The notes under the pieces: model-generated
Told to the model about the DNA's origin: nothing
The model's database searches: none
What the model saw: only the letters and a program-made list of their open reading frames with translations
In this document: in pieces, positions 5,225-52,285 of the stretch
Layout: the number at the start of each line of letters is the position of its first letter
Position numbering within the stretch: position 1 is the first letter of the stretch
Program-made: the position numbers and the translations under genes
Assembly (NCBI GenBank): GCA_964247055.1
Contig: OZ176052.1
Location: 4,216,001 to 4,280,000 of the forward strand
Direction: 5' to 3'
DNA from: Paragordius varius
Taxonomy: Eukaryota; Animalia; Nematomorpha
DNA length: 64,000 bases

Positions 5225-7396
5225 TTTTCTGGAATCGATTTTTAAATATTTTCTGATTCCTTATAGTATAGTGATCAGATTTGCGTTAAAAAATTTTTTA
5301 CTTACCCAGCTCGTTTTGGACATTTCCAAAATTTTCTTGTTTATAAATATTTTTCGCTATGTAAACAAATAATATGTGGCTTACATAAGTATTTTTACAA
5401 GAAATTACCAATTTCAAAATAAAAAAAATTTACTCAAAATATCCAATACTTTTTGTTTTAGGGGGCAAAAACTCTCAAAAATTGGGTAACTTAACATTTT
5501 TTACACAAATATTTTTTATCAATTTATTAAATCAAAACAAACTTTATTATATGTTTTTGGATGTTAATAATGTTTGTTTAAGTATAAATATCACTTTGTA
5601 ATAGCTTTGTGGACTTATATAAATTTAATTTTTACAGCTTTTTTGTTATTTTTTTATGTAAAAAATGATTTAATTTAATCAGCTGTAAATACTAATTTCA
5701 TTTTTTCATCTGAAATTTTTAAATTTTTACCATATATGATGTCAGATATGTTGATTCGTTAGCTTCATTTTTAAATATGTTAAAAAATATGAAATGGACA
5801 GTAATGATTCTTATATAAATTTGTGATTGAATTCTGAATCGGAAAAATCGTCTGCCTTTTGGATAAGAGAAGAACACACCTGGACGATTGAGCAGAGAAA
5901 ATTGGATATGCCATATCTTATCAAAAACGTTTAAATAAAATATAATACCATTAATAAATGATTTCATCATAATATATTGAACTATATGCAAATCCTAATT
6001 ATAATCAGTTATTAGAGTGAATATTTAGAATATATTTTGGTGTACAGATGTTAAGACACGGATAATCTAATCTGGACTTTAAATAAAGTAAATTAGGTGT
6101 AGAAAAAATAAAATAATAATTTATTTATTCGTATATATATAATCGCAAATTAAATTTATATTGTTTCGATAGGTTTTTTCGAAGGGTTTTCTAAAAATAC
6201 CGTTTTGAGAGATGCATTTTTTTGATTAGGGATATCACCTCAGTGCCACTTAATTTATTAGTGTACTTTATATCTTGATGATAAAATTCCAAATCAGTAT
6301 CATCTATCATATCAAATAAATCGATATGAATGGTTGGTTATGAAGGTACGGGAAGGTCAATGGAATGATCAACAGGACGAATTGCACAGGAAAAGTTTGG
6401 ATATTTGATAGGTTTTTTGTTTTTTTTGGTAATGTTAATAAGAAATGGTTTTGGAACTGGACAAAAGTAACATTCAGAATGAGATTTTGGCTCTCGACAT
6501 ATCATAGGGATACCCCAAGGGAGTCCAGGCCCAGTTTTGTGGTACCATGCTCCTAAACTAATGCTACATGTCCGAGATACGGTGTTCGGGGCCCAAATCT
6601 AGATTCCCCATAATATAAAAAAATAGTTTTTTATGTAAGTGGTAATGTTTATACTATTAGATTTTTTATGTATTGTCCACATATATGGCAAACAATATTT
6701 TTATCCATCCTAAAATTATAAATATATATATACTTGGGTATTAATTATATTTTTTGTACATTTTGGGTATAAAATAATATTTCTTGATGAAAAAACTGAT
6801 ATGGAGTATATTTAAGTGTGGGAAATATTTAAAAATATCATATGAAATAAAGAATATATTATGTGCAGCTGAGTAAAATTTAGCTTTTTTTACATAAAAA
6901 AAACAGCAAAAAAGATGTAAAAATTAAATTTATTTTTTAAAATAAAAATCCACACAGCTATTACAAAGTGATATTTATACTTAAACAAACATCATTAACA
7001 TCCAAGAACATATAATAAAGTTTGTTTTGATTTAATAAATTGATAAAAAATATTTGTGTGAAAAAATGTTAAGTTACCCAATTTTTGAGGGTTTTGCCCC
7101 CTAAAACAAAATGTATTGGATATTTTAAGTAAATTTTTTTTTATTTTGAAGATAAATTGGTAATTTTTTGTAAAAATACTTATGTAAGCCACATATTATT
7201 TGTTTACATAACGAAAAATATTTACAAACAAGAAAATTTTGGATATGTCCAAATATGGAAAAAGTCCCATATCTCGAAAACGAGCTGGGTAAGTAAAAAA
7301 ATTTTTTACGCAATTCTGATCACAATACTATAAGGAATCAGAAAATATTTAGAAAATCGAGTCCAGAAAATTGACCCCATATTTTGTTGCACAGTG
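5225..7396 (-). mobile_element. Internally deleted Chapaev3-like (CMC superfamily) DNA transposon with ~500-bp inverted arms
   Basis: 5227-~5715 is the reverse complement of ~6785-7372. The intact end reads CACTGTGCAAC on the - strand, flanked by TAA (7397-7399); the other extreme tip is lost. The - strand at ~6600-6340 encodes IWAPNTVSRTC..W...G.PWGIPMICREPKSHSECYFC...KPIKYPNFSCAIRPVDHSIDLPVP, followed by FYHQDIK. These motifs match, from memory, the WREP..H..CYFC / YP..SAIRPV.H / FHQDIK transposase family. Confidence 0.7.
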
Positions 7397-7752
7397 TAAT
7401 TATATTTTATATTATTTAAAATTTATAATGTTTATCAACTTAATATTGTTATAAAATAGGCTTCAACAAATTCTAATAACTATGTATGTTTTTCAAATCT
7501 TTGTTGATGTCAAGGCATGTTTAAGGAATGACGCATTTGACATGTAAATTTTATTTAAAAAAATATACGAAAATTTTATAATTTATTATCACTGTTAAGG
7601 CCCAAAATCAAAAGCATCATGTGAATATTGCTACAGATTCTATAAGAGTATATATTTCATAATTTCGTGTATGTCTGGTTTCATTGCTTTTCTACGGTAG
7701 AATATGTTATTTTAACAATATTTTCTGGCTACCTCTAAATGTATTATTTTAA

Positions 7753-8305: not shown

Positions 8306-8460
8306 TTAACATAGCGCGCTTAATATGCGATTTTTTATCTAGAATTAGCAAAAAGCGGAAATGTTTTTTATTTAGCATGTATAAAAAATCAAAAGCATTA
8401 AGAGAATTCTGATCCTTTTTTTAAGTATAAAATTTTTTATATTTTTTTATGCACTGTGTA

Positions 8461-11400
8461 ATGAATGCACCACTAAAGTAAACCTTTCAATAAATTTTAA
8501 AGGTATACCTGGTTTCAAACCAATCAATTTGTCGTGGTGGATGTATTATGTAAAGTCACAGATATTGATAATTTTAATTGTCAAATAACTCCAGAAAAAG
8601 TTTATTTGAAAATATATTTTTAGCTGCTCATAAGTATCCCAAATTATAGACCGCTTCAATTGCATTTATATGACCTGGTGGATAACACTCATTCTTCCTA
8701 TAAAATATTATCCTCAAAAGTATATTATTAATTTTATTTTGGGTTGAAGTAAAATTAATAAAACAAAATCAATCGCCAGTATTATGGCCTACGCTTGAAA
8801 AGAATACAAATGCTTTACCAACACCCGACATAAGTATTTTTTTATATTAAATATAGCGAATATATATCCTACATCAACGTCCAAAGGGCCTAAAAATTGG
8901 AATTTAATCGAAAAAGAAATCGAAGAGGTTCGCATATTTATATACTTAATCATGTTATGACCAAATTGGTCATGATTATGTAAGATATTTTAATAATTCC
9001 ATATTTACTCATAATGTATTCCAATTTTATGGTTAAAGTTTCAACAAGATGCATCCCTTACCTAACTTTTAAAATATTATTTAGTATAGTCACAACAAAT
9101 AATTATTGACCAATATGATTTTATATAGTTTCTCATTTTAGTATCGAAATATAAACTAGCAGATTTAAATATTTAAAATTATTAAAAGTTACTACTTAGC
9201 TTTCGGGGTAATAAACTGAACAGAATAAAAGAAAATATCGCAAACTTATGTTAACTTTCAAATATAAAAGATTTTCAAATTAAAAAATCTAATTTATCCC
9301 ATTTTATTTTTCTGCATGTTATAAACCATAAAATTAATTATTCCATTAATATATAGCATGGACTTAAAATAAGAAAAAAAACAATATTTTTAAAACTACT
9401 ATTGATTTATATTATAATGTTCGGTTTTAAAATTTCAATAAACAAAACATTATAACTGATTGCTAAAAATTACTTTTTACAGTGTTTAACTGCTCCAAAC
9501 GCAAAATTATTCATTTTTAAAATTGTAAGCTTCTCTATTTTATATATAACATACACTATATTTTAGCCAAATGTCGAAAAAAATATTTATAGTGCTCTCG
9601 TTCAAGCTTCTTAGCCTATTTTTAGCAACAAATGTTACACACTTTCGCGGTTTCGTAAAAATTTTGCCCAAAAAATTTGAGTACCGGTTCAACTTTTTCG
9701 GTGAAATAATATTTGGTTTTGTTTTTTTTTAAAGTTAAGTTAAACTAGATACTACAATGTTATACAATGTTACATATTTATTGCAATTTTTTGATGCTAC
9801 GATATAGATTCATAGATTCTAATGTTAAAAAAACAAATATTTTATTGTAAAGAAAATCATATTTAGAATATTGGTTCTCTTTATTAAAAAAAGTACTGAA
9901 GCTGTTTTTCAGTTAACAATTAAAAAGAACTAGTATCTTGGTTGTCATCATAAATTTAGTTTTGATAAGGTGAATATCTTTTCTACAGTGGACGCCCTTC
10001 CCTCCTTACGATCATTTTTTTGAAAATAAGCAGCGCCTTTAAAAATATTAGCACATCCTGATTATATTCACACAAACTCAAGTTTTGCAATCGTATAATG
10101 TTAAAAACACCTTCCTTCAATTTTTGAACCAAAATTAATAATGAATTTTTTCATCATTCACAATATCTATTTAATATTTTTTAAACTTGCCTGATCAGAT
10201 GTATATGCCTCGCGATGAGCAATTAATTACAACCTCTAAATACATATTATGTGATCCATATTATGATAATGCTACTACACTTATAAAAACAAATATAAAT
10301 AATATTAATAATTCAAAAACAATTAATAAACCAGGTACGAATCAACATTTGAAATAAAAATTAGATTCAAGAATCTAAATAAAAACTTCAAATTTATATC
10401 GTAACCATTCAAAATTGGGTCTTGGAATGTTGAAACAATCGTAAATAAGCAATGAATGGCTATAGATACGGTAAACTTATGCAGCTGTTGACAAGAAACG
10501 ATATAAAAATGTAGGTATGAAAAAGTATGATGGATATTCATTATTCTACCAAGCTGGGATCGTAATGATCAAAGAGACCCACTGACAGAACTTAATTAGC
10601 GTGGCACAACACAGCGATAGGATAATACCAGCTCGAATGGTGTTTAACAAGCGACCCTCAAACGTAAATGCACCCCAAACTTGTCCGATAAAGCAAGCTG
10701 GATTCTTGGGATCGCTCTAACAAATATGTTTTAATATACCCGAAACTGACTCTACGATGATTGGAGGATATCTAAACGCACGTGTTGGAATATACATGGA
10801 GGGGATACAACTTTGATAACCGGAACAAAAAAGGAAAAACAATTAGCCAATACTCTTTTCTTTCACCAACAGCAAAAATAAGCTGATTACATAATAATAA
10901 TAATAATACAACAATAGACTACATCCTAACTACAACATATCCAAAAATATCTGGTAAAATACAACCACTTATCATTCGGAAACACAGCATAAATTTTTAA
11001 CATTAACTTTATTCGATTCAATGCCTTTCAATAATAATAATAATACCTAACCTTGACTATAACACAAGCTTAAAAATCATTAGATAATAAAATATTTCCA
11101 AAATCCGCTTAATTTAACTGTGAAGACTCCTGGCAGTTTTAGCAGCAATGCGATCGAAAGTTTAGAAAACAGCGTGGTAAAAGAAACAGTAAATTCCAAA
11201 AGAAATGGTGGTGGGACGATGCAATTATGCCATTACTTGAAGAAAAGGCGCGTTTGTATAAAAATGGAAGATCGAAAAGAGAATGCTACAAAGTTGAATG
11301 TAACAAATACAACAAAATGGTATTTAAGAAAATAATGATAAGGCTAAAGATACTGCCGATAAATTGGAATAGGAAATCCAAAATTATACAATTTTCAAAC

Positions 11401-13730
11401 ATATGAAACATTACAATAATAACAAAAAAGATATGCCAACGATTAAATGTGTAAAAGATAATTATATTATTTTTTTAAATACAACCAAATCAATTCTTAT
11501 GTAAGTTGGAACAAAATCTAAACAACCCTTTAACATCCATCATAAGTTCTGACAGAGATCTTTGTGGCCTTTTAAGGACTTTTACAATACATGAAATCGA
11601 AATTGCTTTAGACCAAATGTGTTCATACAAGGCTTCGGGCCCTTGTGAACTATGCTTTAATATCATAAAATTAATACCCAATATTTCCATGCTTTTAACA
11701 AAATTATTTAATAAAATAATAGTTGAAATGTAAATACCCACAGACTAGAAAAAAGTATCATATTTCATATCTTCAAAAAGGAGATATTCTCTGCTTCTCA
11801 TACAGGCCCTTAACTTCTAGGGTTTGAAAATTTGAAACATGCTTAAAAAATCTTATCACTTAGCTTATCTCAATCGATCCAATATTCGTCCTCAATAATA
11901 AATACCTAGCAAAAGGTCTTAAATTATAAAAGGCTTACGACTCAGTAACCTACAACTTTAATAATAGCATCACTACGCTACAACAATCTATATACAATTA
12001 TATTTATAATGTTAATCTACATCACTTAATCAGCTGTGTTATTACACCTTTTAGGAATTCGGAGCATTTTAATATTAATACCGGGCTGCATCAGGGGTCT
12101 GTCTTAAACCCTCTTTTTCTCATATTTATATTAGACTCTATTACAAAAGACATTAGAAAAAGATGACCATATGAAATTCTTTACGCAGACGATCTCCATA
12201 ATTCCTGCGGAAACTATTTCAATACTCGAAAATAAATATTTATTGTCATTAAAATTACAAAAAAACGGGCTTAGGATCAATACAAAAAAAACAAAAATTT
12301 AATCACAAGAGATGAGCACCAAACTACAACTCACTTTGTTGTACAAAATGCAAAATTGGGTCCATAAAAAATGCTCCAATATAAAAAATTAATAATAATT
12401 TTATCTGCACACCATGTCCTTTATCAACACCACTGCCAATAGATATCTCATACTCTAGTTTTCAATGGAGATAAAGAAATTGTAGCATTTTTTCCATATC
12501 TTGGCGATTATATAGCATCTGATGGTTCATTGAGGGATGCCAATTCTCATACAATCAGACAAGGATGGGTTAAATTTAATCTTAACCAATAAAAATATTA
12601 AATCGAAATTATTAGACAAAAATTTACAAAATGGGAGTAAGATCAGCTGTTACAGCAACTGACTTAAGTAGACCTACTAGAGCTGAAAATCACATGCTAA
12701 AAATCTGCAAAAATTGTTTTGATAATACCATTAAAGAAGTACCCATATCTCTGTTTATTAAGCGCCGCATGTGCTATTGTGGACATATAGTATTAGCACT
12801 TCTTGTTGGTCCTTGAACATTTTAAGTTGGTCATTTAGCTTTTTTGTATTGTTTTAAACTTTTATCAATTAATGTTATTCATCTATTTTATCATTTTAAC
12901 CTATTATATTTATTGATTTTAAAATTATTTAAAATATTTATAAGATCTTAACACGTAATAAAAAATATATAAGTTTTGTGTCTTCTTATTTCCAATTTTT
13001 CATTAACATTTGTAACTATATAATTTTGTTGAATTAGAAAAAATTGTTTGAAATAAAAAAAGTGGTTTTTAAATAAAATTATTTTTTATTGAATAAACAT
13101 ATGATAAAAAAGAATATTAAGCTAAAAAAAATATAAAATAAAAAATACATGCAAAAGTTATGGTTGAATCAAAATTCTAAAAAATTTGATAACAACAAAC
13201 ATATACTATGTTTTCCATAATTTAGAAATATGGATTTTACACAATTAGATTTTATATTGTCTCAGGAAATTAATTGACTGGTTATTTTGAAAGCGTTAAC
13301 AAATGCATTTATGATCGACCAAACCCAACATACATTTTTTATAGAAATATAACATGTTTTTAGGAAGAAAAGGGTGAAAAACTCGAAGGTGAAGCCGAAG
13401 TTAATCGATTATTTCAACAAATTTATGCGGACGGATCCGACGATGTGAAAAGAGCCATGAATAAATCTTTTGTAATTCTATATTTTCTTACTTAAACTTT
13501 AAAAATTTATGTGTACCATGGTACTTTATAAAATTTAAAAATTTTATAACGCGTTTGTGAACAAAAACCATTTGTAACACTTAATCCAATTCTAATTTTA
13601 TTGTTGTTAACATAAATTTTTTTAGGTCGAATCGGGCTGTACTGTTTTAAGCACGAATTGGGCTGATGTTTCAAAGAAAACAGTTGAACCCAAACCACCG
13701 GATGGGATGGATTATATTAAACCTTTTTGA
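8461..13730 (+). CDS. SUGT1: SGT1 co-chaperone (CS + SGS domains, no TPR), 194 aa. Exons 8461-8477, 8503-8599, 8624-8719, 8743-8833, 8857-8927, 13364-13471, 13626-13730
   Basis: Spliced translation [23 protein letters not shown]...ILSSKVEVKLIK...LWPTLEK (CS domain) ...[83 protein letters not shown] (SGS domain). All phases are consistent; intron 3 requires a GG acceptor. Confidence 0.93.
10390..12830 (+). mobile_element. Decayed RTE-type LINE (APE endonuclease + reverse transcriptase) inside SGT1 intron 5
   Basis: Ordered motifs in shifting frames: KIGSWNVET (~10401), [13 protein letters not shown] (~10770), TIDYIL (~10915), WWDD (~11210), [10 protein letters not shown] (~12085), ILYADDL (~12175), [20 protein letters not shown] (~12495), [10 protein letters not shown] (~12765). 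Many stops and frameshifts. Confidence 0.85.
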
Positions 13731-16225: not shown

Positions 16226-17157
16226 TCTATATAATTATAAAAATGGAAAATGCTGGCTTTGTGATCTGGTACAGGAAAACCGGTAGACCCAATCAAATCC
16301 AAATATCGAAAAAATATAATCATTAATAAATGTACCGACAATAGCTTCGCCTTTTTTTTGAAATAGGCCCCCAGTTCGGGCCCACCCCGTATGAAAAACG
16401 GGTTTTTTTTGAAAACAGAAGTCTACAAAAATTGTGTTTTTGAGACAATTTTCCGGAGAACGTGTTGGACCATTCAATTTCAAATATGATTTTTGTTTAC
16501 TTATTTTCGATTGCGCCGAACATAGTCGAGTCACTTTTTTAATTTAGGCCCTCTTTTTACCGGCTCCCCCTGTAAAATGCCATTTTTTTCAAAAAACAAA
16601 GTCCACAAAAATAATTTTTTAAATCGATTTTTTGCCCAAGGTATGAGACCGTAAAAATTCAATATGGATTCCACGTATTCCCTGTTAAAAGGCAAAAATT
16701 TTAGTCCACCGTTTATTTGATGATAGCTGCTGGGTAAGGAGCTACCCGCTAAAAACTGATTTTTCATATAACTTTGTGATCTGTTTCCGGAAAACCGGTG
16801 AACCCAATCAAATCCAAATATCGAAAAAATATAATCATTAATGAATGCCCCGACAATAGCTTCGCCCTTTTTTGGAATTAGGTCCCCAGTTCGGGCCACC
16901 CCGTATGAAAAACGGGTTTTTTTTGAAAACAGAAGTCTACAAAAATCGTGTTTTTGAGACAATTTTCCGGAGAACGTGTTAAACCATTCAATTTTAAATA
17001 TGATTTTTGTTTACTATTCGGTTATGCCGAACATAGTCGTCTCGCTTTTTTAATTTAGTCCCACTTTTTACCCGCTCCCCCCGTAAAATGCCATTCCCGC
17101 CTCCCAGAAGTCCTAAGGACTTCCTCGGACTGCGTAGCAGCACGAGATTTACGCTAG
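16226..17157 (+). mobile_element. Non-autonomous Helitron with an internal 515-bp-period tandem duplication
   Basis: 5' end A|TCTATATAATTATAAAA; 3' end hairpin ctcg-ga-ctgc-gta-gcag-ca-cgag followed by ...CTAG|T; A/T insertion site with no TSD. gtgatct at 16261 and 16776 marks the two repeat units. Confidence 0.85.
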
Positions 17158-18127: not shown

Positions 18128-18841
18128 TTATGTTGTTAATTCTTCGGCACCTTGTTTCGCCTGTTTGGCCAAAATTCTTGCCTCACGCTCAATAAGCCGT
18201 CGTTCTCGTTCAAAAGTTTTAAGCCTATCAATTTGGTCTTGATAATTGCAATGCATAAATTCTTCGTACAATGGTTTACAGTGCCGAATAACACGCGGAA
18301 AATTATCTTGCCTACACTTTTGAAATGCCAGCAAAAATCGGGAACAATAATCTATCGTATCTCGGGACGGAAAATGTGCCGCCTCCAAATTCCTACGAGC
18401 AGCAGGTTCTCTTTTACAAGGACGTGGCTGTGGTTTATAGGTTCGATTTGGGTCGGGTTCATGACCACGCCATTCTAACGGGAGAATAGCACGGGGATCC
18501 ATTGAGGAAAGAAACAGATAACCCCGCGTATTTTTTCCTCGATATATACCATATTCATTGTATTGGCTTTCTTCGTCCTCCCATGTCTCAGCATTGTTGA
18601 CTGTATGTGATGATTCATGCAACCCATGATTTTCTGATTCAAATGTCTCGCCTTTAGGTTTTACATGATGATCGTGATTAGAATGATGTTTTTCATGCAG
18701 CTTACGCCGATATTCTTCGTGTGATATCGTTCCGTCAAATCCAAACAAGGGATCAAACATAATTCCATCCTTAACATCAGGGGTCCATTGTGGGAATATA
18801 AAATTACATTTTATCCAATAATATACAGTTCCTAAGACCAT
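18128..18841 (-). CDS. NDUFB7: NADH:ubiquinone oxidoreductase subunit B7 (B18) with a ~100-aa His-rich insertion, 237 aa, single ORF
   Basis: N-terminal FDPLFGF motif; twin CX9C (DYCSRFLLAFQKC...CKPLYEEFMHC); diagnostic C-terminal R.K.FERERRL.ER. Confidence 0.9.
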   Translation of the reverse strand: MVLGTVYYWIKCNFIFPQWTPDVKDGIMFDPLFGFDGTISHEEYRRKLHEKHHSNHDHHVKPKGETFESENHGLHESSHTVNNAETWEDEESQYNEYGIYRGKNTRGYLFLSSMDPRAILPLEWRGHEPDPNRTYKPQPRPCKREPAARRNLEAAHFPSRDTIDYCSRFLLAFQKCRQDNFPRVIRHCKPLYEEFMHCNYQDQIDRLKTFERERRLIEREARILAKQAKQGAEELTT

Positions 18842-19141: not shown

Positions 19142-20678
19142 ATGACTATGGGATCTCACACTGCAAGCACTGAAAAGAAGTCGTTCCAAAGACTTCCGAA
19201 AACGGTTATCCCTACGCATTATGATGTTAAAATAATTCCAAATATAAAAGAAATCAAATTTTCCGGTGAAGAAACTATTGATTTGGAGGTATATTATATT
19301 ACATTGTTTTAGATTAAAGAACCAATTGATAAAATTGTATTAAATTCATTGGAACTCGATATTTCTGATGTTGTTTTCAAGTCTGACAAAAAAGGTATTT
19401 TATATTCGCCATAAAATATTTTATGTTAGATAATATAACGCCTAGCGTTAATTATGACGTGGAAAACGAACAAGCTATCTTCCATTTTAACAATAAAATT
19501 GAGCCTGGTTCAGCGAAGTTACAGCTTAAATTTAAGGGAAAATTGTCTGATAAAATGAGAGGATTTTATTTTACCAAATATTTGCATGACAATAAAGAGA
19601 AAGTCGCCGTCACAACTCATTTTGAGGTTTTTTGTTTTCCCTATTCTTAAATAAATGTAAAATATATTTTGAAATTAATTGGCAATTATTTAACTTATTT
19701 TTTTAGTCCACAGATGCGAGACGAGCTTTTCCATGCTGGGACGAACCCGCCATAAAATCAAAGTTTACCATAACTCTCGTGGCACCGAAAGATTTTGTCG
19801 CTTTGTCAAATATGGTAAAATTTTTACCTTTAAAATTCCTCCCCAAAAAATTACTATAATACGTATAATTATTTAATTCAATCATTTATGTTTTATATAT
19901 TTTTGGGTGAAAATATATTTTTTCACTATTGCGGTTTAGCATATATATTATCGATTTTATACATTTTTAATAAAATATCTTTGTATTCAAAAAATCTACA
20001 CGCACGAAACTTTTATCAGCTGAATGGAAACAAATATTTAGTTGTTTGTTTATCGATATCTGTGAAACTCGTGTTATGACTTTAATTTCTATAATACTTG
20101 GATACATTCATAGTCTTTTCATGCAAATTCGGGTAATTGAATTTTCCAGGCTATTAAATACTTTAAAAAATATGAAATCAATCGAAATATAACTCTAATG
20201 AACTGAACAAAGTATCAAAAAAATTCTAAAAATACTTGTAATTATTTATTTTAAGGTAATACCCAAAAGTAAAGATTTAGTTGATATGACATGCATGCAT
20301 TAGTTATAATAAAAATTAATACAAATAAACCACTATTTCTGTTTCTATCAATGTTAGATTTGATTTAAATAATAATTAGCTTTAATTTTATTTAAAATTA
20401 AATAAACACGATATTTCGCAAAAATGTTGCAAAATAAAAATGGTGCTAAAGTAGTTTAATATAGAATTTTTATTCAAAACTAAATTTATTTAGATATTTC
20501 GGTTTTATATAATTTTTATTATGCATAAATTTAAATTGGGACCGTTTCTTTTATTTTCTTTAAGTAGTTTTTAAAGAAATCAACTCTAATCTCCTGGGGT
20601 ATTTAAAACCCTAATTTGCAAAGTGTTAACGCACAAAATAAATTGTAAAGTGAAAGGGCAAGGTCACTAATAAGCCAT

Positions 20679-22027: not shown

Positions 22028-25000
22028 CGCCTTTTGTTTATTTTGGGTTAAGGGCCAATTTTTTCCACACTCAAAATGATGTGGAATAACAAATGGCAAA
22101 ATAAAATTTGGCAGAAAATGTTCAAAACGAGTATATAATACACCTTACAGGCAAAAGGTGATATGAGCGCCTTTTATTATATTAACAAAATTATAATTAT
22201 AAATGATTGTTATCATATTCGAATTTTTATTTGATAATTTATCGGATATATACCGATTTCGTAACAAGTCGTTTTTTTAATTTTTTTGTTTTAAAATATT
22301 TAAGAAAACGAAAAGAATTTAATAAAATCAAATTTACAAAACGGTTACCGGTTAAAGATTAAGCCCATATTTACATTAAAATGTATTTAGCGGTGTGTGA
22401 TAAAAGCGATTATAATTAAATTAAGGATGCTAAAATTATCCTTAAAATTACTCCGGTAATAGATGTTTAAAATATTGAGGCACAATTGTGCAAAATTTCA
22501 TTTCATTGACGGTTATTAAATGGCGAGATTTTTACAGAATGCGAAAATGGTTTGTACAAAATTAAATTTAACCGTGTGCGAAGATTTTGGTTTAGTTTAC
22601 CATTTACAATTCAGATTCGCCCTCGAACAATTCAAATTCACCCTAAAAATTAATTTTGTGTTTTCGGGCTAATATAACTTATCCGTAATATGAAATATAT
22701 TTTTACTACATAGTTTATTATTTTTATAGCATTATGTTAATTTTAAACAGAATTTCATATTTTAAAAATATTATAATTAATAAGGGTAATTTTAAATCTG
22801 AAAAAAAAACACATAATTTTTAGGATGAATCTGAATTCGACGGTGAATTCGAATTGTTCGAAGGCGATGAATTTTTCAAGGGTGAATTTGAACTGTAAAT
22901 GGTATATTTATTTTTCTCACTAAATTTTATATAATAATACGTAATATCTGATATTATTTTTATTTAGGATTTGGGTTTTTTCTAAATATTTTTCTTGATA
23001 GATAAAACAGCATAAAAATTTATTTCCTTAATATATCTTTTTTGACTACAACAGGTTACGACTAAATCACTCGCTTTTTACGAAAAATATTTTGGCATTA
23101 AATACGAACTCCCTAAATGTGATTTAATATCCATCCCTGATTTCGCTTTTGGTGCCATGGAGAATTGGGGACTCATAACGTTCCGTGAAGTTTGCATTTT
23201 ATTGGATGAAAAAACATCGTCAACCAATACCAAAAATTACATTGCAATCGTCGTTGGTATGTATTTACGTATTTGTTTGTTTGTTAAAATGTAAAATTCT
23301 CACTTATCTCAAACAAATTACAAAAACATATTTTTATAATGTTGTAAACATTGATGGTTATTTCGTTTTTTTTTGTTTCATTAATTTTATGCTAGAAAAA
23401 GCTTGTTTTAAACTATATTAGACATCTTGATATAGTTAATTTTTTTGCAAAAATAATAACTTTTGGATGATAATATAGTATTGTATCGTTTTAACTTATA
23501 GGATTTATGCCTTAGATTTTATATTTTTTTTTGTCTAATATCTTATAGCTCATGAATTGGGTCATCAATGGTTTGGAAATTTAGCTACAATGGTATTCGT
23601 TTTCTATGCAATTATTTTATTGACAATTATATTTCCGATATTTATCAACAATTATGATTTACTAATAAAACAATGATGCCTATTATCTAAAAAATATGCT
23701 ATAATTTTACCAGTTTTTTTATTATTTTTATCAATTTTTTAATTAAACACTAAATACGTGATTTTTCACGTTCTAATAAATATTATCTTAATTTCGCTCG
23801 AAAATTAAACGCGAGTGTTTACTATTTAAAATTATTAGAGATACGTTATCTTATTTAAGATATTATTAATTTTCACTATTTTTATGTGTTACTTACGACT
23901 GAAATTATTTTATATTAGGAATGGTGGACATACCTTTGGTTGAATGAAGGTTTTGCTACATGGGTCAGTTTCCACTGTATTAGTCAAATTTATCCGGAAT
24001 ACGATATCTGGACGCAATTTGTTTCTTCGAGTTTTCATGAGGGAATTAGTTTGGATTCTTTGGCCACGAGCCATCCCATTGAGGTAAATATACTTTTTTT
24101 AAATTATTTAACCTTTATTATACCATTTACAGTTCAAATTCACCACCCTTGAACAATTCAAATTCAGCTTAAAAATAAAATATGTGTTTTCGAATTAATA
24201 TAACTCATTGATAATATGAAATATATCTTTATAACATAGTTTATTATTTTATCAGTCTTATTTTAATTTAAAACAAAATTTTTATTTTAAAAAATATATG
24301 AAAATATAGGTAATTTTTAATCATAAAAAACTTATATTTTATATGAGGGTATATTTGAATTGTACATGGTATATATTAATTTAAAATAGTTTTTGGTTTA
24401 ATCTATTATATATATTTTCATATATATTATTATTATGGTAGTTAGGGTGTTTGATTATTATATAATTTTTAGATATATTAAATCCATATTTTTTGTCTTT
24501 AACCTTATGTGGCAAAAAATTTGCAAATAATTCAAATTACCTTAGAAAATGGTGATTAGCATGAATCGACATTAAAAATAAAAATCTTTCTATTAAACAG
24601 ATAGAAAGGTATGACCCGATTTAAAAAATAATTTTTACGATAAAAAAAATAAAACAGTATGCAAAAGTTATTTTGACAAGATTATCAAGTTTTTGTGTAA
24701 AAAATCGGTTTGTCTGTCTAATTTTATTATTTTTAGGTTACAGTAAATCACCCCCATGAAATTGATGAAATTTTTGATGCCATATCTTACGAAAAGGGTG
24801 CATCTTTCCTTCGCATGATGAATGAATACTGTGGACCTGAGGTTAAATTATTTTAATATTTCAAATATTTATACACCAGGGTTTGAAACCACGCCTCGTT
24901 TTAGGTTTTAGTAAAACAGTTTATGTATTTTTTCGATTAAATTGATTCGTTTATACAAAAATAGGTAAAAATACCCCAAAAATCTTATTTAGCCGAAAAT

Positions 25001-28000
25001 TAACCGCGTAACCATTTTTGAAAAAAAAAATTAATTTTTTTAGAACAATCAGACCAGAACGGGGTTTCAAAAAAAATGTGCGAAACTTAACCTATTCAAA
25101 TCCTTGGTTTTTATTATATATATGTTTTATAATCTATTTATAATGACAGGCGTTTCAAAAGGCTCTAAATTTGTACCTTAATAAGTTCAAGTATAAGAAT
25201 GCATCAATCACGGATTTTATGAACGCTTTAGAGGAGGCTAGTGGTAAAAAATTGGGAGCTATGGATACATGGTACAAGAAAGTTGGGTATCCTCTCGTTA
25301 ATGTAAATTATTTTGATTGATTTAATTTAATTTTTTTGGTTTAACTTAAATGTCTGTATATGTTAATTTTTCTACTTGTTTTATTAATAAAGTTCTCCTT
25401 TATCCGCTATTTTCACCTTTCAAAGGAGTTAATACTATAATAATAATAATTATCATGTTTAATATGCGATAAATTTATTTAAACATGAATTATAGGATGA
25501 TATTTTATATCTTATTTTAAAAACTTGATTAAAGGTATAAATTTTTGTGTTGGTTTAAAGACATCAAAAAAATGTAAGTTTACAAAACGTGCGATACAGA
25601 TTGATGTAATTTTGTTTTAAAGATTAATTAACTAATCTGATGTTTTCAAAAATTATTTTTGCAAAATGTGCCATAATTCCAATATTTTTTGGTTAAAGAT
25701 TTTTTTAAATTACAATAAAAATTGAAATTATACGGACAAACCGTAAAAATAAGACAAACATTTTTATCTAAAAGACAACCATACCATACTTTTTAAAACA
25801 TTAATTTTTCCATACAAGCTATTAAGTTATAATTATACAATATAGAATTGATTGTGTTAGTATATATGTCTCTATTTTACACTTAATCATTTATAAACGA
25901 GTTATATTAAAATCAAGATTTTACTAATATGGGTGTCTTTAAAAAAATATTTGTCTTTATATTTTTGCGTTTTGTCCATATAATTTTATTTTTTACTGTA
26001 AATAATTAAATAAAAAAAGTTTAACTAATTTTGCAAAACATATGATATCATATATTGATTTTATTTTAGTTTTAATAGATTTATGGTAACTAGTTATATA
26101 ACAAAAAATTTATTTTTTAGGTTGAAGAAGTTAAAGACGGAAAATCACGTAAACTTAAATTGTCTCAACAAAAGTTTTTGCTTACAGGTCCAGTCAACGG
26201 TATGTACCATATAACTTTATATTTTGAAAAATTATAATGTTGGAATATATAGAAAATATTTATTTAACACTTGGATACAACACATTCATTTTAGTCCTTC
26301 GATTCAAATTGGGGTAGTTAAATACCCCAGGCCTGTTTAAAATTAACTTTAAAAAATATGGAAGGAATCAAAACGATGGCAAAATCTTGCACCTATATAA
26401 CATTAATAATCCGAAATATATAAAAAAATTTATTCAAAAATACTTGATATTACTTATTTTAAGCTAAAACCGAAAGGTAAAAATTTAGTCAACGTGACAT
26501 GCTCGCAATGGTAAAATTGAAAAATAATAAAAAATAAACAGTTTTTTCCATTTCTATCAATCTTAGATGTAATTTAAATAAAAAATTAGCTTCAATTTTA
26601 CCCTTAAAATTAAATGAAGACGATATTTAACAAAAATTTTGTATAATAAAAATGGCGTCGAAGTAGTTTGACATGGAGCTGTTTTTTCAAAACTAAATTT
26701 TATTTAAATTTTTTGGCATATTTATATTATTTTTATTAGGATAGAAGCATAAATTTAAATTAGGACCGTTTCCTTCAGTAGTTTTTAAAAAATCCTAACT
26801 TAAATTTAGTCTGGGGTATTTAGATACCCCAATTTGAATCGAAGTGTTAAACTGTATTTAAAGTTTGTTTAAAAACTAATATAAGTGGTAGTTTTTTTAG
26901 ATTCTTAATGCATGTTTTATATATTATTAAGTTTGATGAATGCATATTAAAAATGTACATGTGGTTAAAATGTTTTTTGAAAATGAATATAATCTTTGAT
27001 AAAAATATATTCAAATAGCTATTATTAACCATATATATTCTTTTTAAATGAATAATCTTTGATAAACGAAATTCCAAATATAAACATTAATAACCATATA
27101 TATATTCTTTTCTGGTATGATATATTTTTAGATGGTACTGTTTGGCAAATCCCCATGACATTTTGCAGTAAAAGTTCACCCAAAAAGCACATTGCTTCAA
27201 CTTTAATCGATAAGCAAAATCAAGAATTTGTAATTAATGATGTTACACCCGAGGATTGGATTAAGGTCCGAATTAAATTCACAATTTTTTAATAAGTTAT
27301 CCATTATTCATTTTGATTTATTCATTAAAGAGTTTTTTCGGAATTTTTCTTGGCTAATTTCAGAATAAAATATATTTGCATGTCCAATAGTTTTATCTTT
27401 TGTTTGTAAATTTATAGGAGAAACTTACTAGTTTATTTATTGCCAGATAGCATATACGATATATAAAGAAATATTGGTTTAAAGTTGGTGAATATTAACA
27501 TAAACTATATTTTTGCTGTTTATAACTAATAAAATTGCTCCTTACTGTAAATGCTATTTGTTTATCAATAATTAATAAAAAACTAATAATGTATGTTAAC
27601 TATAATTTTATGAATGCGCTTTTTACGCACCTACATAGTTGAACTGTGAGACTGTCAGTTTTTGTCGAATTCATTACAGTCCAGAAATGTTGGCTGCTAT
27701 TAAACCGGCCATAGAGAATAATACACTTAAACCGCTGGATCGATATGGGATTGAAAGTGATTCTTTTGCTTTGGTAAGTAGAATTATAAATAATTGTAAA
27801 GAAATACAAAACATATAAACTGTAAGGCAAACTTTTTATACTTTTGTTAAATTTAGGTTTTTTTACAAAAACTAAAATGATCATAAAGTATAGAATTCAT
27901 GTTACCAGTTTACATAAATGTTTATTTTACAACCCGGAACAATAGATTATCTTATAAAAATCTCTAAAAATATTTTAACCTTTAGTATTCAGGTTTTGTC

Positions 28001-40715: not shown

Positions 40716-42570
40716 TTACTCTTTGGTATATTTTTTGTTTGAGTGAATGCGTTTTAGCAGATTGTCATCATTTTTTAAAATATTGTAGAAGTCTTCACAA
40801 GAATTTGTCAAATTATATTTGACAGATAAAACCTTTAAAGTTTCAACATTTAAATTTGATTTTTCCGATGTCCACACCTGATTTACTGTGGAAAAAACGC
40901 GCTCAGTAGCAGCGTTGGTTCCAGGTAAAGATAGTGCGAATTCCACAATTTTTAAAATATTATTGTATGTAATATAGTTGGTTTCAAAATGATGAAATAT
41001 TTCCAACCATTTCTTTTCTACTGTATATTTTCTTTTGTCCATAATTTAAGTTTTTCATTATTAATATATCTTTTAACTAATGATACTTCAGAAAAAAGAT
41101 CATTTTCTGAAAGATTACTTTTTGATAATTTTTGGGAGCAGATATAATCAAATGATTTTTGAACATCGCACCAATTAAATTCTGATTTTAATGTTATCCA
41201 ATGAAAATGATCAATTTCATTGAATTGCGTCGTCCAGTCTTCCAAATAATCTTTACAGTTTGTTTAAAACATTTTTATATGGTACAGGATATCTTGGCGA
41301 TTTATTAAGCCTTGTTTTTCTAAATTTTTTATTATATTGCGGATGGTTAATGGTATAAAATTATTTTCTAACCGTTCTTGACATTGGAATTTTAGGTTAC
41401 TAACTTCTTTGGCTACTTCGATTGCCGAAATTTTGTCACCTTCTATATATTTAATAACATTTTGAAAGAGAGAAGCTTTATGTAAGAATTCTAACCATAT
41501 TTGTGAACAATCATTTTTAAAAAACTTTTTTAAAGTTGTAGGCCATTTGTCCTGTGATAATAAAAAAGATTTTAAAGGGTCATACATTTTTTAAATTCTT
41601 TCGATAGCTGGCATAAAAGCTAACCAACGAGTTTTACAATATCCAAGCATTTTTTGATATTGAACTTCTGCATTTTCACAGAATTCAAGCGTTTCAACAC
41701 TACCGTGTATATAAAAATAGAAATATATTTTAACAACTACATTTTCCACATCTAGGGGTAACAAATCAGCAGCTGTTTGAATAGCGTTGTGTATTATATG
41801 CGCTGCACACCCAACGCCAATAATGTTTTGATTAAGATTATCTGTTAATTTATGAAAAATATTTTTTGTTCCCCTCCTTGCTTTTCCACCAAAGTTCTTA
41901 TTGGTGTTGTCAGCGCAATATGCGATAATTTTGTATTTTAAATTATTTTTTTGCATTATTGAAGTAAATATTATTTCGGAATTTTCACCGGGTAGGGATA
42001 TTAAATCTAAAATTTTAATTTTTACTCCGGTTTCTGAATCAAAATATCTCATCAAAGTGGGAAATAATTTTGTTTCATGGTGATTTGATGCATCAGAGTA
42101 TAGCGATATGGAATTAATTTTCAGCAAATCTTTTTGTATTTCAGAAAATACATGTGGCGAAAGGACATTGCACACAATGGCTTCAGCCTTTGTACGGGCA
42201 CATGTAAATTTTTTATGGAATAACGTGCGAATAACCTGTGAGGTACAGTCCATAGATCTAAAGGAATGATTGTGATTAACGGCGTGAAAAGATAACACGC
42301 CCTCAGCTAGTGCCAAATTCTTTTCTTCCTCTCCAAAAGCGGTTTTTCAAAAAAATCGCTCATTTTGTAAGATGATGCCACCATATCTAAACATTTTTTA
42401 TGTTTCTGTGTTTCCATATGCTTTGTAATATCATGCTTGCCGCCATGTGCTAGGCTGAATTCCCCCTCGCATATAAGACATCTAACAAATGATTCATTCT
42501 TCGTTTTTTTAATAAAAGGAAAATCCTTCATTAATTAATCGTTGAATTTACAACCTCTTTTTGTGCTCAT
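40716..42570 (-). pseudogene. hAT transposase pseudogene (BED finger, DDE core, dimerisation domain)
   Basis: ATG at 42570 with an early in-frame TAA; FVRCLIC..FSLAHGGKHDITKHMETQKH; YSDASNH; YCADNT; GCAAHIIHNA; KTRWL; PGTNAATERVFS. Split into at least five ORFs by frameshifts or stops. Confidence 0.9.
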
Positions 42571-43821: not shown

Positions 43822-46800
43822 ATGGGAGGTGGTGAAGAAAAAAAGCATAAGAAACACAAAGATAAAAAGAAAAAAGAGAAGAAGCATCATAAAAAAGAAA
43901 AAAAAGAAAGTTTTGAAGAATTATATTACTATGAGGAAGAAAAAAATATTGATTCAAATACCCCGAATGGTTCATAATTGTTTTATTTTTTAGATGTTAT
44001 GCCCACCCAAGAATTATCCCTTTCTATCCAGGATACGAAGTATTAAATGTTTTCAAAATTTAGTAAACTACGTGAAAAATTGGGGTTGGCACCTTTAAAC
44101 TTGGAATCATCCAATAAAGTTGAAGAAACTCTAGATGGTATTTTTTTATTATATCTTTTGATTTTAATTCCGTTCATTTATAAAACTTTCATTAAAGGCA
44201 ACAAGAAATATACAATTGAAGGGGATACATTTGTACATTTACCCCCTCAAAATTGGGGACAGAAAAAAGCCGATGAAAAGTTACAAGAAAAATTACAAAC
44301 TCGACGCCAAAAACGAGAATTGGAGGAGAAATTAGGGTAATATAATAATATATTTTTATATTAATATATGGCATACCTGCTGTTTCCCCTTAACTTTAAC
44401 ACAGGGGGTGTCGAACACCCTTTTTTCCGTACACAAAAGTACTCTAAAAAAATTTAAAAATAAAAAGTGGATTACGATTATTTAGAAGATTCATTGAAAT
44501 GCTTAAAAAACAGTTAATCAGCCCATGATGAGATCTGTGTTGGACACCCCTGTTTTAACAATACTTTATTTTTATTATATTAAATAACACGCATATATGT
44601 CATACATTACTCCATTTTTAATAATGTTGTAAACAATATCGCTTAGATTAAATAAAACTAAAACACTTGGTCAAGCCGACATCGCAGACGAAAACAATGC
44701 TCTTTCTTGGGTTCAACGAAGTCGCCAATTGGAAAAGGAAAAGGCTTTAGCAGCAAAAAAAGTATGATATATAACTTTTGTCATTTAAATTAATTTAATA
44801 TAATTTTTGAATAAAAAATATGTTTAGTTTCTTTTAAAATTTGTTGAATTTGGATGGAGGTGGTTCATATGAAAATATATTAAAAGTTATAAAAGTACAC
44901 GTCCAACCCATTTTTTTCTTTTTTTCATATCACCTTATTTCGGATTGAATGTGCGGAATTGATAGAGTAGAGATTTAACGATCTTTATTTTATTGTAAAA
45001 TATTTTTTTAAATAAATTCTGTAAATGTTATAAATATTATGTGAAAGTCTGACATTACATGAGAGCTGAGTTAAACCGATTTTATCTCTTTTATAGAAAT
45101 ACTTTCACAGTAATAGTAGACATTATTACATACAAAATATGAATATATAACATAATTTTTGATCCATTGATTTTCATATAATTTAAATGTTAACGATTTT
45201 GAAATTCTATTCTGAATTTCGCAACCAAAGTATAAAAACTATAAATATATTTGTAACTTTACATATACTTTTTAAGTTTTGTCTTTAGTATTTTTGATTG
45301 CTACTGTAATCAACCTCATTAAATATATTTTTAGGCTAAAATGCTTGAAGAGTTGGACCAAGATTTCGGTATAGAAGATTTGATTGAATCAAATATGGGA
45401 ATCGGTAGAGGACGCAAAAGATTGAGAGAGGATGATTTTGATGAAAAAGTTAATTTTTTATTGTTTAAGGTTGTTTATATTAATTATTTTAATCCTGTAA
45501 AATGAAATTTTTTAATTTTTTTGATTACACATAAAGTTAAACTAAAATCCATTTGATTATATTTATTTTATTGTAATTAATATATACATAGTTTTTATCT
45601 TCCTGATAAAAAAATTTTATTAAAATTTTAAGCCAGCAGCTTATAAATCAAATTATTTTTCATTTTTTTACAAAATATTATAATTTTATTTATTTACAAT
45701 TAGGAATATTCAGCCAAACAACTGAAAGGCATTAAAGTAGATCATTCTCTTGAAGCCATACCTGAAGGCGATACTGTTATTTTAACGCTGGCTGATAAAA
45801 GTATTTTTATTGAAATTAACAATAATAATATGTATTTTACATATTTAACGCGATTTTGATCAAAATATTAATCTTACAACAAGGGGTCATATTAGTCCAT
45901 ATCATCAGCTTTTCAAATCGTTATTAATGTTCATAACTTATCAATAAACCGAATTTTTAGTCAACAAATAATTTTGTTAAATGCCATTAGTTAGTTAAAA
46001 ATATATTTTTGACTAAATTTGACACACACATTTTAAACTCAACCATTTTTTTCTTACTCACTCAGATATTTTGGATGAAATGCAAGAAACGGATATAAAT
46101 ATTGATGGTACTGAAAACGTCGTACTTCAAAACCCAAACCTAATTGATGCTGAAAAAGCGGCCAAAAACATTGAAACTCGGTCAAAACGACCAGAATATA
46201 AACCCTATTTAATGGATGAAGCTGAGATGTATGATGATTTTGGGATGGTAAGTAATTTTTTAGTTAATAAAAATTTGTGAAACAATGTATTGTATATTAA
46301 CAATGTTTCCTTTTTCTTTAGTACAAATCAAAGTCCCTGCTTGACAAATATGATGAAGTGATTGGAGATGTGCCTGAAAAAAAGACGTTTGTTCTGGGTA
46401 AAATAAATTATATTTATATATATAGGAGATATAATTATACATTTTTTAATTTTTTATCATAAAATTATTATATTTGAATAACACATGATATTACAAAGAT
46501 TATAGGAATATTTTTAAGGGCACTCAATCAATTTGGCTTTAATTAATTTACTAAACATTTTATTACAAACAGTGGGCAATCAATTTACTGATTAAATTTT
46601 TTTTCAGGGGATTATGGTATCGTGCAGGCATCCCAAATAGAGAAAGACAAGGAAGAACAGATTACCAAAATGAGACAAGAATTAAATATGGTTAATATTT
46701 TTACCGATTAATGGCAAATATCTTTTAAATTGATATTACTGTAAAAATTAAAGTATACGGACAAAACGCATCAATATGAAGACAAATATTTTTTTTCTAA

Positions 46801-49800: not shown

Positions 49801-52285
49801 AATTTAAAAGGAGGAAAAAGAAAAAAATCATACTACATATTTTTACTCTTAATTTTAAAAACCATTACATCCAATAATATGGCTGGTGAAAGTATCAATC
49901 ATACATAAAATTATAGAGTTGTTTAGATTTTAATTTATTTTATCAAAAGTTTGGGTAAAATATGTTATTTTAAGGCAAGTTTATCATTACCAATATTTAC
50001 GTTGGTGTATTAAATGTATTTCTTTTTCAAATAAAATATCATGGATATGTAAGTTATTTATAAAATAGATAAAAAATGGACATTTTTTTATTTAATTGAA
50101 ACATATTTGACATACAATTAATTATTAAAATATAAGGTATTTGAAATGGTTCAAAAACAACTTGACCCAACAGCAAGCGAATCAAATGAATTAAATGATG
50201 TTGAAGCGTCAAACACTATATTAAACCCATCAAGTACCTACCTATATAATATTATATTTGCACTATTTTAGCATATTAAAGGTTACTTATAGCTATAAAA
50301 TACATATAAATTGAATTACACAGACAAAATGTTAAAATGAACAAATATTTTTTTAAAGATCACCACACTCTATAAAAATCTTCATTTTCATATGTAAACT
50401 ATTTAATGACAAACGTAAGATATATAATTGGGTGTGTTTTCCATTTACATCTCTATCTCATACTTTGCAGTATAAAATAATGCAAGTTTAAAAAAGTATA
50501 GCAATCTCTTTTTTTAAAAAGATTTTTCTTCATAATTTTACGTTTTGTCTGCATAATTTTTAATTTTTACTGTATTATATAATCTTATTTTAAGGTAAAA
50601 AGAAACCAGTAAACGCTACTTCTACTTCAGCATCTTTGGTGCTTAATAGCACTTCCGAATTTTGTCGAAGTCTAAAACAAAATGTTTTGAAAAAGAGTGT
50701 ACCATCAGTTTCTGAAACTAAACCAGTTAAAATTACATCTTATGATGCAACCAATACAACTACGTTCCAAGTAAATTATATGAATTTGTTTTTATAGAAT
50801 TTTAACGATCATTTTATAGTATTTTTTTACAATATTTACTGTTTATGTGATATACAAATTTTTTTAAAAAAAATATTTATTCTAAAAATATGTAGCTGGG
50901 ACCACAAAATTTGGGATATTTTTTACCAATATTTAACATTCGCTTAGTTTGTGAATTCTTGTCTATTAAACAGCACATGCTACTATGTTATATATATAAC
51001 ACGTTAAAATTTAGCGTTAATATTTATGGGGATTAAAAGTTTTGCAAAAATATAATTTTAATCATCTCATATTTGTCAGAATGGAGACAGTTCTGATGAT
51101 GATGAGAACGATTTCATGGGAGGGGATGATGAAATTCCCACTAAATCGAAATCAATAAAACCGACAGATACGATTACACAAGAACCAAATATAGAAAAGG
51201 GTTTAGCTACTGCCCTAAAATTAGTTACCGAAAAAGGTAATTTTATTACGATTAGTTTGTTAGTTTTGATGATTAAAATGTATATATATTTTTAAGAATA
51301 TTTATATTCTAGATACTTAATAGTTTTTCAAATAAAGTCATAACAATGATTGACTAGCTTATTAATATTTGATTTTAATGTGTAAATCATAGAAAAATAT
51401 TTTAATTAAAAAAAAATTTAATGATGATTAGGTTATCTTGAGGCACCCGAAAAAGTACCTGAATTAAGCGCCGAATACAAGGAACTAAAATGTAAACGAT
51501 ACACTGTGGAAGACAAACATTTTGATTTGGATGATAAACATTCTTACAAACGTGATCGATACAATGGGCCAATCGTCGATTTTAAAGTTTTTTTATTTTT
51601 ATAAAAATAAGTCATGAACCACACCATTTTTATTCTATTAAACTCCTATATTAAATCATAACTACAGTTTAATGTTAATGTCTATAATATATCATAAAAA
51701 CATTTTCAAATAAGGGATTATTAATTTTTGGTTTGATCGTTTTTATTATCTCTCGGGATATTTATTCGTAAGGTATGGTTAATTAATACATTATCTTTTT
51801 ATTTGGATTTTTTATTATTCAAATTTGAATGTTGTAAAATATTTATTGATAGATAAATAACGAAATTTAATTTACACTTAGGATAAAAAGGATTATACTC
51901 CTGATTTTAAGCTAAATTATGTGGACCAAGAGGGAAGATTATTGAATCCGAAAGAAGCGTTTAGATATCTATCTCATAAATTCCACGGAAAACATGCCAG
52001 CAAGAAGAAGGTTGAGAAAAGAGCCAAAAAATATGCCGAGGTAAAGCTTATCTTTGCATATTTTTAATATTTTTTTAAAATAATAAATGTTGAAATAAAC
52101 ATTTTTTATCCTTAAGTTAATGAATGTAACCAAATATTATTTTATTTTATTGCTATTAGATGATTGATAAATTGAATAAAACAACTACCAATGATACAAC
52201 ACAGAATACGGTTGAATTGTTACTCAATAAACAAAAAGAAATACGTGCCCCATATCTTATCCTGAGTGGCAAATCACATTTATAA
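43822..52285 (+). CDS. SART1: U4/U6.U5 tri-snRNP-associated protein 1 (SART1/Snu66), 781 aa, 20 exons: 43822-43969, 43994-44039, 44064-44137, 44198-44336, 44647-44761, 45335-45448, 45704-45800, 46066-46247, 46322-46397, 46608-46690, 47131-47190, 47301-47377, 47783-47832, 49246-49460, 50137-50233, 50595-50770, 51080-51236, 51432-51586, 51882-52040, 52160-52285
   Basis: HIND motif [24 protein letters not shown]...[20 protein letters not shown]...[59 protein letters not shown]. All introns are GT-AG and phase-consistent (2346 nt). Exon 13 is the least certain. Confidence 0.93.
44402..44552. mobile_element. 151-bp hAT MITE in SART1 intron 4
   Basis: CAGGGGGTGTCGAAC ... GTTGGACACCCCTG; TSD ctttaaca / ttttaaca (7 of 8). 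Confidence 0.8.
46739..47025. mobile_element. MITE family F, copy 2 (SART1 intron 10)
   Basis: gtaaaaattaaagtatacggacaaaacgc...ctaaaagacaacc with inverted ggttgtcttttag...tttgtcttt; right tip decayed; end approximate. Confidence 0.6.
50295..50572. mobile_element. MITE family F, copy 3 (SART1 intron 15)
   Basis: Right end ttttgtctgcataatttttaatttttactg|ta matches family F; left part acagacaaaatg...aacaaatatttttttaaaga; start approximate. Confidence 0.55.

Follow-up and report, generated by a model that had tools for sequence, protein, structure and literature searches.

Seven segments of 23-25 nucleotides (nt) that interrupt three genes in the window analysed here, a 64,000-nt stretch of DNA (G000:C3:4216001-4280000) that sits inside a 14.4-Mb contig of a 110.6-Mb assembly with 44 contigs and approximately 25% G+C, are very probably ordinary spliceosomal introns of the U2 type, reduced to this size in a hairworm (Nematomorpha). 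Four lie in the gene for SGT1, one in an M1 aminopeptidase gene, and two in SART1/Snu66. The initial annotation of the window had listed all seven, and when checked in the sequence each was found where it had been placed, with lengths of 25, 24, 23, 23, 24, 24, and 24 nt and an A+T content of 80-91%. Its description of the segments as GT-initiated is right for all seven, on the plus strand, but it did not mention that the segment at 8720-8742 ends in GG, while the remaining six end in AG. As had also been proposed, these sizes are below the usual animal minimum, in genes that additionally contain kilobase introns.

If kept, the 23- and 25-nt segments would shift the reading frame, and each of the 24-nt segments would bring in an in-frame TAG or TAA. 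Since every segment causes either a frame shift or an in-frame stop, none can be read through. We infer that all seven are removed from the RNA, based on homology and on the conservation of intron sites. The claim that removal restores conserved protein agreed with homology across the SGT1 pieces and, in the aminopeptidase and SART1, with domain continuity only.

The SGT1 gene and its conserved intron sites

The SGT1 model, encoded on the plus strand, comprises seven exons with a total of 597 nt (198 codons and the stop), separated by introns of 25, 24, 23, 23, 4436, and 154 nt, and its two split codons read AAG and ACG. Exon 1 (8449-8477) provides the start codon and ends in phase 2, and an equally short first exon is present in the orthologue from the hairworm Gordionus montsenyensis (GCA_954871325.2; hereafter Gordionus). 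It is followed by intron 1 (8478-8502; 25 nt, GT..AG, phase 2) and by exon 2 (8503-8599), in which the CS domain starts (Pfam CS 3-35, E 0.0079; SGT1 profile 132-169, E 6e-7). Intron 2 (8600-8623; 24 nt, GT..AG, phase 0) contains an in-frame TAG and precedes exon 3 (8624-8719), which lies within the CS domain (SGT1 profile 178-201) and from which the CS match of the genome search extends to 8722. Intron 3 (8720-8742; 23 nt, GT..GG, phase 0) separates this exon from exon 4 (8743-8833), where the CS domain ends (SGT1 profile 201-222; tblastn with P0142). Beyond intron 4 (8834-8856; 23 nt, GT..AG, phase 1), the SGS region starts in exon 5 (8857-8927; SGT1 profile 232-255, E 7e-4; 61% identity to Gordionus over 28 residues). 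The 4436-nt intron reported by the initial annotation was recovered as intron 5 (8928-13363; GT..AG, phase 0), and the SGS domain continues through exon 6 (13364-13471; Pfam SGS 15-50, 42 bits), intron 6 (13472-13625; 154 nt, GT..AG, phase 0), and exon 7 (13626-13727, then TGA to 13730; Pfam SGS 50-79).

Exons were searched singly, and homologues were compared with the genomic DNA by tblastn and by profile, rather than with a joined, spliced model. Exon 6 matched 392 database proteins at E<=0.001, and 26 full-length matches of that search were used to build the SGT1 profile. Six stop-free pieces in different frames matched this profile in order (132-169, 178-201, 201-222, 232-255, 256-292, and 292-321), with exact continuity at intron 3 (201/201), intron 5 (255/256), and intron 6 (292/292), and the 26 full-length homologues also matched the SGT1 pieces by tblastn. 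In the Pfam search of the genome, CS positions 2-72 were read through the in-frame 24-nt intron 2, and strong, cut-off-passing SGS matches were present at the SGT1 locus only. Searches of single SGT1 exons against solved structures gave no useful match.

We then mapped the exact gene structures of three SGT1 orthologues, from Gordionus (P0151, NCBI-annotated), the soft coral Dendronephthya gigantea (P0098), and a passerine bird (P0009). Codon position and phase were identical in coral, bird, and Gordionus for all four tiny SGT1 introns. At the site of intron 1 (phase 2; 25 nt here) the corresponding introns have 41 nt in Gordionus, 82 nt in the coral, and 415 nt in the bird; at intron 2 (phase 0; 24 nt here) they have 46, 127, and 993 nt, at intron 3 (phase 0; 23 nt here) 40, 272, and 9587 nt, and at intron 4 (phase 1; 23 nt here) 124, 114, and 1272 nt, respectively. 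The site of the 4436-nt intron 5 (phase 0) is occupied only in Gordionus among the three orthologues, by an intron of 17,362 nt, with none in coral or bird, while that of intron 6 (phase 0; 154 nt here) holds 6633 nt in Gordionus and 605 nt in the bird, with none in the coral. Gordionus, which belongs to the same phylum, consequently has all six sites with their phases, including the hairworm-specific one. On these gene structures, four exact coincidences among approximately 390 possible sites cannot be chance. Because the same codon position and phase recur in three orthologues, the comparison identifies the four tiny SGT1 introns, the one with the GG acceptor included, as ancient introns that shrank.

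The GG acceptor itself has AG as its counterpart in the Gordionus orthologue (window 8741-8742), and no AG near this acceptor keeps the frame open in the sequence inspected around the segment. The GG may reflect an error of the assembly, an allele, or a non-canonical acceptor that is tolerated.

These sites also bear on whether the segments could be assembly indels or frameshifts of decaying pseudogenes, an explanation to which the absence of transcripts from the database searches, the one segment without AG, and the error-prone nature of AT-rich homopolymers in some sequencing methods lend something. Random errors, however, would not give lengths of 23-25 nt with GT in seven of seven and AG in six of seven cases, nor would they coincide exactly, in phase too, with four ancient intron sites; moreover, all exons are open and conserved, and the strong SGS matches fall at the SGT1 locus only, such that we regard this explanation as very improbable. 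Even less credence is given to removal at the DNA level, in the manner of the short internal eliminated sequences of ciliates. In Paramecium, such eliminated sequences are similar in size to the tiny segments, and here too the database searches yielded no transcript, but the segments end in GT..AG rather than in TA..TA, and they occupy ancient spliceosomal intron sites at which Gordionus has annotated introns of 40-46 nt.

Tiny introns in other genes of the window and genome

The aminopeptidase and SART1 introns likewise lie on the plus strand. Intron 1 of the M1 aminopeptidase gene (19289-19312; 24 nt, GT..AG, phase 0) contains an in-frame TAG, and intron 2 (19395-19429; 35 nt, GT..AG, phase 1) was missing from the list of the initial annotation. 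Exon 1 (19142-19288) corresponds to positions 2-26 of Peptidase_M1_N and exon 3 to positions 66-123, with the 27-residue exon 2 bridging the gap. In SART1/Snu66, the identity of which was read from downstream exons, introns 1 (43970-43993; 24 nt, GT..AG, phase 1) and 2 (44040-44063; 24 nt, GT..AG, phase 2) each contain an in-frame TAA, and the latter interrupts the HIND motif: exon 3 begins at HIND position 11 of 25. The 15-residue exon before it reads as what we take, by reference to the human motif, to be the first half of HIND. No Pfam match was obtained for the 22-residue frame that includes SART1 exon 2, and a SART1 exon retrieved nothing from solved structures or from a word-based homologue search.

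Several further candidates from a frame-joining scan were discarded, specifically two in SART1 (50572-50594 and 50771-50797) with flanks that are not coding, one (24708-24736) that is the tail of a longer intron, and one (25173-25197) that lies inside an exon.

The seven tiny introns are the only ones below 30 nt in the window, where the others range from 35 nt to 4.4 kb and most have 80 nt to several kb. In the three window genes, the tiny introns are the first two to four of each gene. The aminopeptidase has approximately 20 introns and SART1 many, and in both of these genes the short ones are the first two only. Elsewhere in the genome, contig C5 carries the gene for RPL3, which is interrupted by introns of 24, 24, 26, 29, 26, and 26 nt; all six begin with GT and end with AG, and Pfam continuity runs from 170 to 172 across one of them. 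HSP90 (introns of ~370 and ~79 nt) and one actin (~108 nt) had no tiny introns. Judged from the window genes, HSP90, and one actin, tiny introns are a subset, not the rule, and the genome-wide median intron would not fall below 30 nt.

Among the 24-nt tiny introns, the length of which is a multiple of three, all six would carry an in-frame stop if retained (8600-8623, 19289-19312, 43970-43993, 44040-44063, L027:1694-1717, and L027:1887-1910); the chance of such a stop is approximately 0.55 per 24-nt intron, as a rough estimate from base composition with n = 6. Paramecium introns with lengths that are multiples of three are reported to carry in-frame stops as well.

The window also carries, on the minus strand, the remnant of a hAT-family transposase (40716-42531) that extends across five abutting open frames. 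Its domain matches are to hAT dimerisation (E 1.7e-5) and, weakly, to a BED or C2H2 zinc finger. Two adjacent open frames on the same strand (16235-16534 and 16531-16962) share a near-identical peptide stretch, of which one copy was scanned and had no Pfam match; the region (16235-16962) looks like a tandem repeat with a unit of approximately 500 nt. Also on the minus strand, an open frame of 237 codons (18128-18841) has an NDUFB7 domain at its C-terminal end and a long, unmatched N-terminal part, and neither a word-based search nor exact look-up returned a homologue or match for it. Finally, a large gene on the plus strand (58425-63269) encodes right-handed beta-helix repeats and includes one open exon of 515 codons.

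Splicing signals and machinery

The signal pattern was computed on 13 tiny introns, that is, the seven of the window and the six of RPL3. Position +3 is A in eight and T in five of these, with no preference further on. Toward the 3' end, every one of the 13 has T at -5, within a T-rich stretch from -7 to -3, and the share of A at positions -8 to -10 is 46-62%, without a strict motif; the impression of the initial annotation that there is no obvious branch consensus was accurate, in that the pattern among the 13 is weak. The extended U12-type 5' motif was absent from all seven tiny introns of the window, for which no search for minor small nuclear RNAs (snRNAs) was made. As for the machinery, the best U1 genes have the canonical 5'-site-binding sequence at their 5' end, the best U2 genes have the canonical branch-binding box, and the genome includes SF1 and a U2AF2-like gene.

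We propose that the tiny introns would be removed from precursor messenger RNA by the normal major spliceosome via intron definition. Recognition would depend on a minimal 5' site, made up of GT with A or T after it, on a short T run ending at -3, and probably on a branch adenosine some 8-10 nt before the acceptor. In so small a space, distance may be the main factor that determines the 3' cut. The GG acceptor of SGT1 intron 3 could then function, unless the G in the place of A is an assembly error or an allele.

The initial annotation had instead argued that an approximately 190-fold size range within one gene may need a modified spliceosome. That argument was not supported, as a wide range within a gene is ordinary (40-17,362 nt in the Gordionus orthologue and 415-9,587 nt in that of the bird), and U1 is canonical at its 5' end, as is U2 in the branch-binding box, alongside SF1 and the U2AF2-like gene. 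Modified or dedicated machinery for the tiny introns, with changed snRNAs or with other factors replacing U2AF and SF1, nevertheless has points in its favor. In an intron of 23 nt, only approximately 13-15 nt would separate any branch point from the 5' site, which is under the presumed tolerance of model spliceosomes. The 5' site is reduced to GT and A or T, the T run spans approximately 5 nt, one acceptor is GG, and one full-length U2 copy has GTAGAA. In addition, human introns of 56 nt reportedly use SPF45 instead of U2AF (10.1101/784868). The canonical best U1 and U2 genes and the presence of SF1 and the U2AF2-like gene speak against modified machinery, a conclusion also drawn for myxozoans (PMC13644364). 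The occurrence of long and tiny introns within the same transcripts means, in addition, that one machinery must serve both. We consider modified machinery unlikely. Nothing found in U1, U2, SF1, or the U2AF2-like gene calls for a special spliceosome, and normal U2-type splicing is the simplest reading.

The U2 search also uncovered an unusual set of copies. Rfam U2 matches numbered 46, and 19 of 20 fetched copies below the best three are truncated at the 5' end and are without the branch-binding box: U2 is kept from about nucleotide 39 on, and stem I and the branch-binding box are replaced by AT-rich sequence. Copies are located at G000:C3:257000-528000 and at the contig ends C8:6857, C6:8570, and C4:7260, as well as at C2:11.95-11.99 Mb and C5:12.73-12.79 Mb. 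The truncated copies look like a U2-derived repeat family, situated partly at contig ends. With 19 of the 20 fetched being 5'-truncated repeats, the idea that these U2 "variants" are altered snRNAs was rejected. In the full-length copy mentioned above (G000:C4:2626169-2626361; L064; 153 bits), GTAGTA of the branch-binding box is replaced by GTAGAA, and this copy may represent either a variant snRNA or a pseudogene.

A number of observations weigh against shrunken, normally spliced introns. The segment at 8720-8742 ends in GG, and canonical splicing has no such acceptor. The database searches did not turn up a transcript or protein from this species, as no match reached 100% identity, short exons on their own give weak or no family matches, and the branch-site pattern is based on just 13 introns. 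Orthologue gene structures were compared for SGT1 only, such that the three introns in the aminopeptidase and SART1 are more weakly supported, by in-frame stops, frame, and domain continuity only. Furthermore, AT-rich DNA such as this contains, by chance, many GT..AG segments between open frames that they join. In a scan for segments of 20-32 nt in which both joined open frames had at least 22 codons, with the reversed window as the control, we counted 169 on the plus and 129 on the minus strand, versus 134 and 148 in the reversed sequence. Since the pattern count is no better than the reversed control, the case rests on homology and conserved sites.

A hairworm genome among lineages with very short introns

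The 15,693-nt mitochondrial contig (C44; L039, L040) contains dozens of perfect palindromes, with arms of up to 208 nt that are 100% complementary and have no loop, and one of which is inside a conserved nad5 motif. Long perfect inverted repeats in mitochondrial protein genes are a hallmark of Nematomorpha (PMC6649704). On the same contig, a hairpin unit of 52 nt is repeated in tandem (~6750-7450). Of the SGT1 homologues that were compared to the window by tblastn, a Gordionus protein (P0088) had the highest summed score, with approximately 58% identity over 133 aligned residues. A profile search identified this protein as coming from Gordionus; it ranked first in that search because it had served as the query seed. 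The SGT1 of Gordionus and the SGT1 here are both TPR-less and have the extra intron site absent from coral and bird. An N-terminal TPR domain is present in coral and bird SGT1 and is lacking in that of either hairworm (window 8449-13730; L041). Together, the mitochondrial palindromes and the SGT1 similarity identify the genome as that of a hairworm, distant from Gordionus.

That the window stems from a ciliate or other protist with introns of 20-30 nt, be it by contamination or because such a protist is the organism sequenced, is hardly conceivable given these results. The 25% G+C and the introns of 23-25 nt do resemble Paramecium (PMC5014332). However, the window has animal-type genes with kilobase introns and a hAT transposon, and TAA and TAG are never sense in its exons; the nearest SGT1 relative is a hairworm protein, the mitochondrial contig has nematomorph palindromes, and the window lies inside a 14.4-Mb contig.

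A survey of 51 animal genomes (September 2026) found introns below 30 nt only in myxobolid myxozoans and one dicyemid, and predicted more cases (PMC13644364). Our literature search on intron length in hairworms found nothing. We consider it evenly balanced whether Nematomorpha constitute a third, independent animal lineage with introns below 30 nt, in which only a subset shrinks (the 5'-most introns, and all of those in a highly expressed gene) while the genome keeps transposons and kilobase introns, such that shrinkage is not a by-product of compaction, and for which Gordionus represents a second stage of the process. The hairworm case would add an ecdysozoan lineage to the animals with such introns. 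Of particular interest is the coexistence of tiny and kilobase introns in one transcript, together with a sister lineage at an intermediate stage. At the same ancient sites, introns go from 415-9587 nt in the bird down to 82-272 nt in the coral, 40-124 nt in Gordionus, and 23-25 nt here. This makes the lower size limit of splicing testable, as well as whether shrinking goes with gene position or expression rather than with genome size. If true, genes of this kind would be broken by gene finders that accept no intron below 30-40 nt, and standard annotation and completeness tools would likely miss or break them; the broken models may inflate the universal metazoan gene loss discussed for hairworm genomes, and estimates of gene loss in the phylum would need to be rechecked.

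Comparable introns had been attributed by the initial annotation to Paramecium, microsporidia, chlorarachniophyte nucleomorphs, and dicyemid mesozoans, a list to which myxobolid myxozoans can now be added (PMC13644364). The myxobolids Henneguya salminicola, Thelohanellus kitauei, and Myxobolus rasmusseni are parasitic, AT-rich animals with GT-AG introns of 22-27 nt that occupy conserved positions, a 5' site of approximately GTa, a weak A upstream of the AG, a canonical U2 snRNA, and U2AF (PMC13644364), features akin to those seen here, where a U2AF2-like gene is present. Unlike in the window, where the tiny introns are the first few of each gene, 22-27 nt is the genome-wide median in myxobolids. 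Because Cnidaria and Nematomorpha are different phyla, the hairworm introns have an origin independent of those of myxobolids. The bilaterian parasite Dicyema japonicum is described in the same report as having introns of approximately 20-30 nt and reduced splice-site motifs, and the signal pattern of our tiny introns matches that of myxobolids and of Dicyema as presented there (PMC13644364). In Dicyema, however, introns are portrayed there as similarly short genome-wide, whereas kilobase introns and transposons persist in the present genome. Paramecium and other ciliates have introns of approximately 25 nt with similar size and AT-richness (PMC5014332). In ciliates, however, introns of this kind are the only ones, and the genetic code is different, whereas the hairworm is an animal whose introns vary widely in size. 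The closest parallel comes from within the phylum, in that the first three SGT1 introns of Gordionus are also unusually short (41, 46, and 40 nt) beside introns of 6.6 and 17.4 kb. These short introns of 40-46 nt are above 30 nt and within the reach of gene finders, whereas their counterparts here have 25, 24, and 23 nt, and the one with 124 nt in Gordionus has 23 nt.

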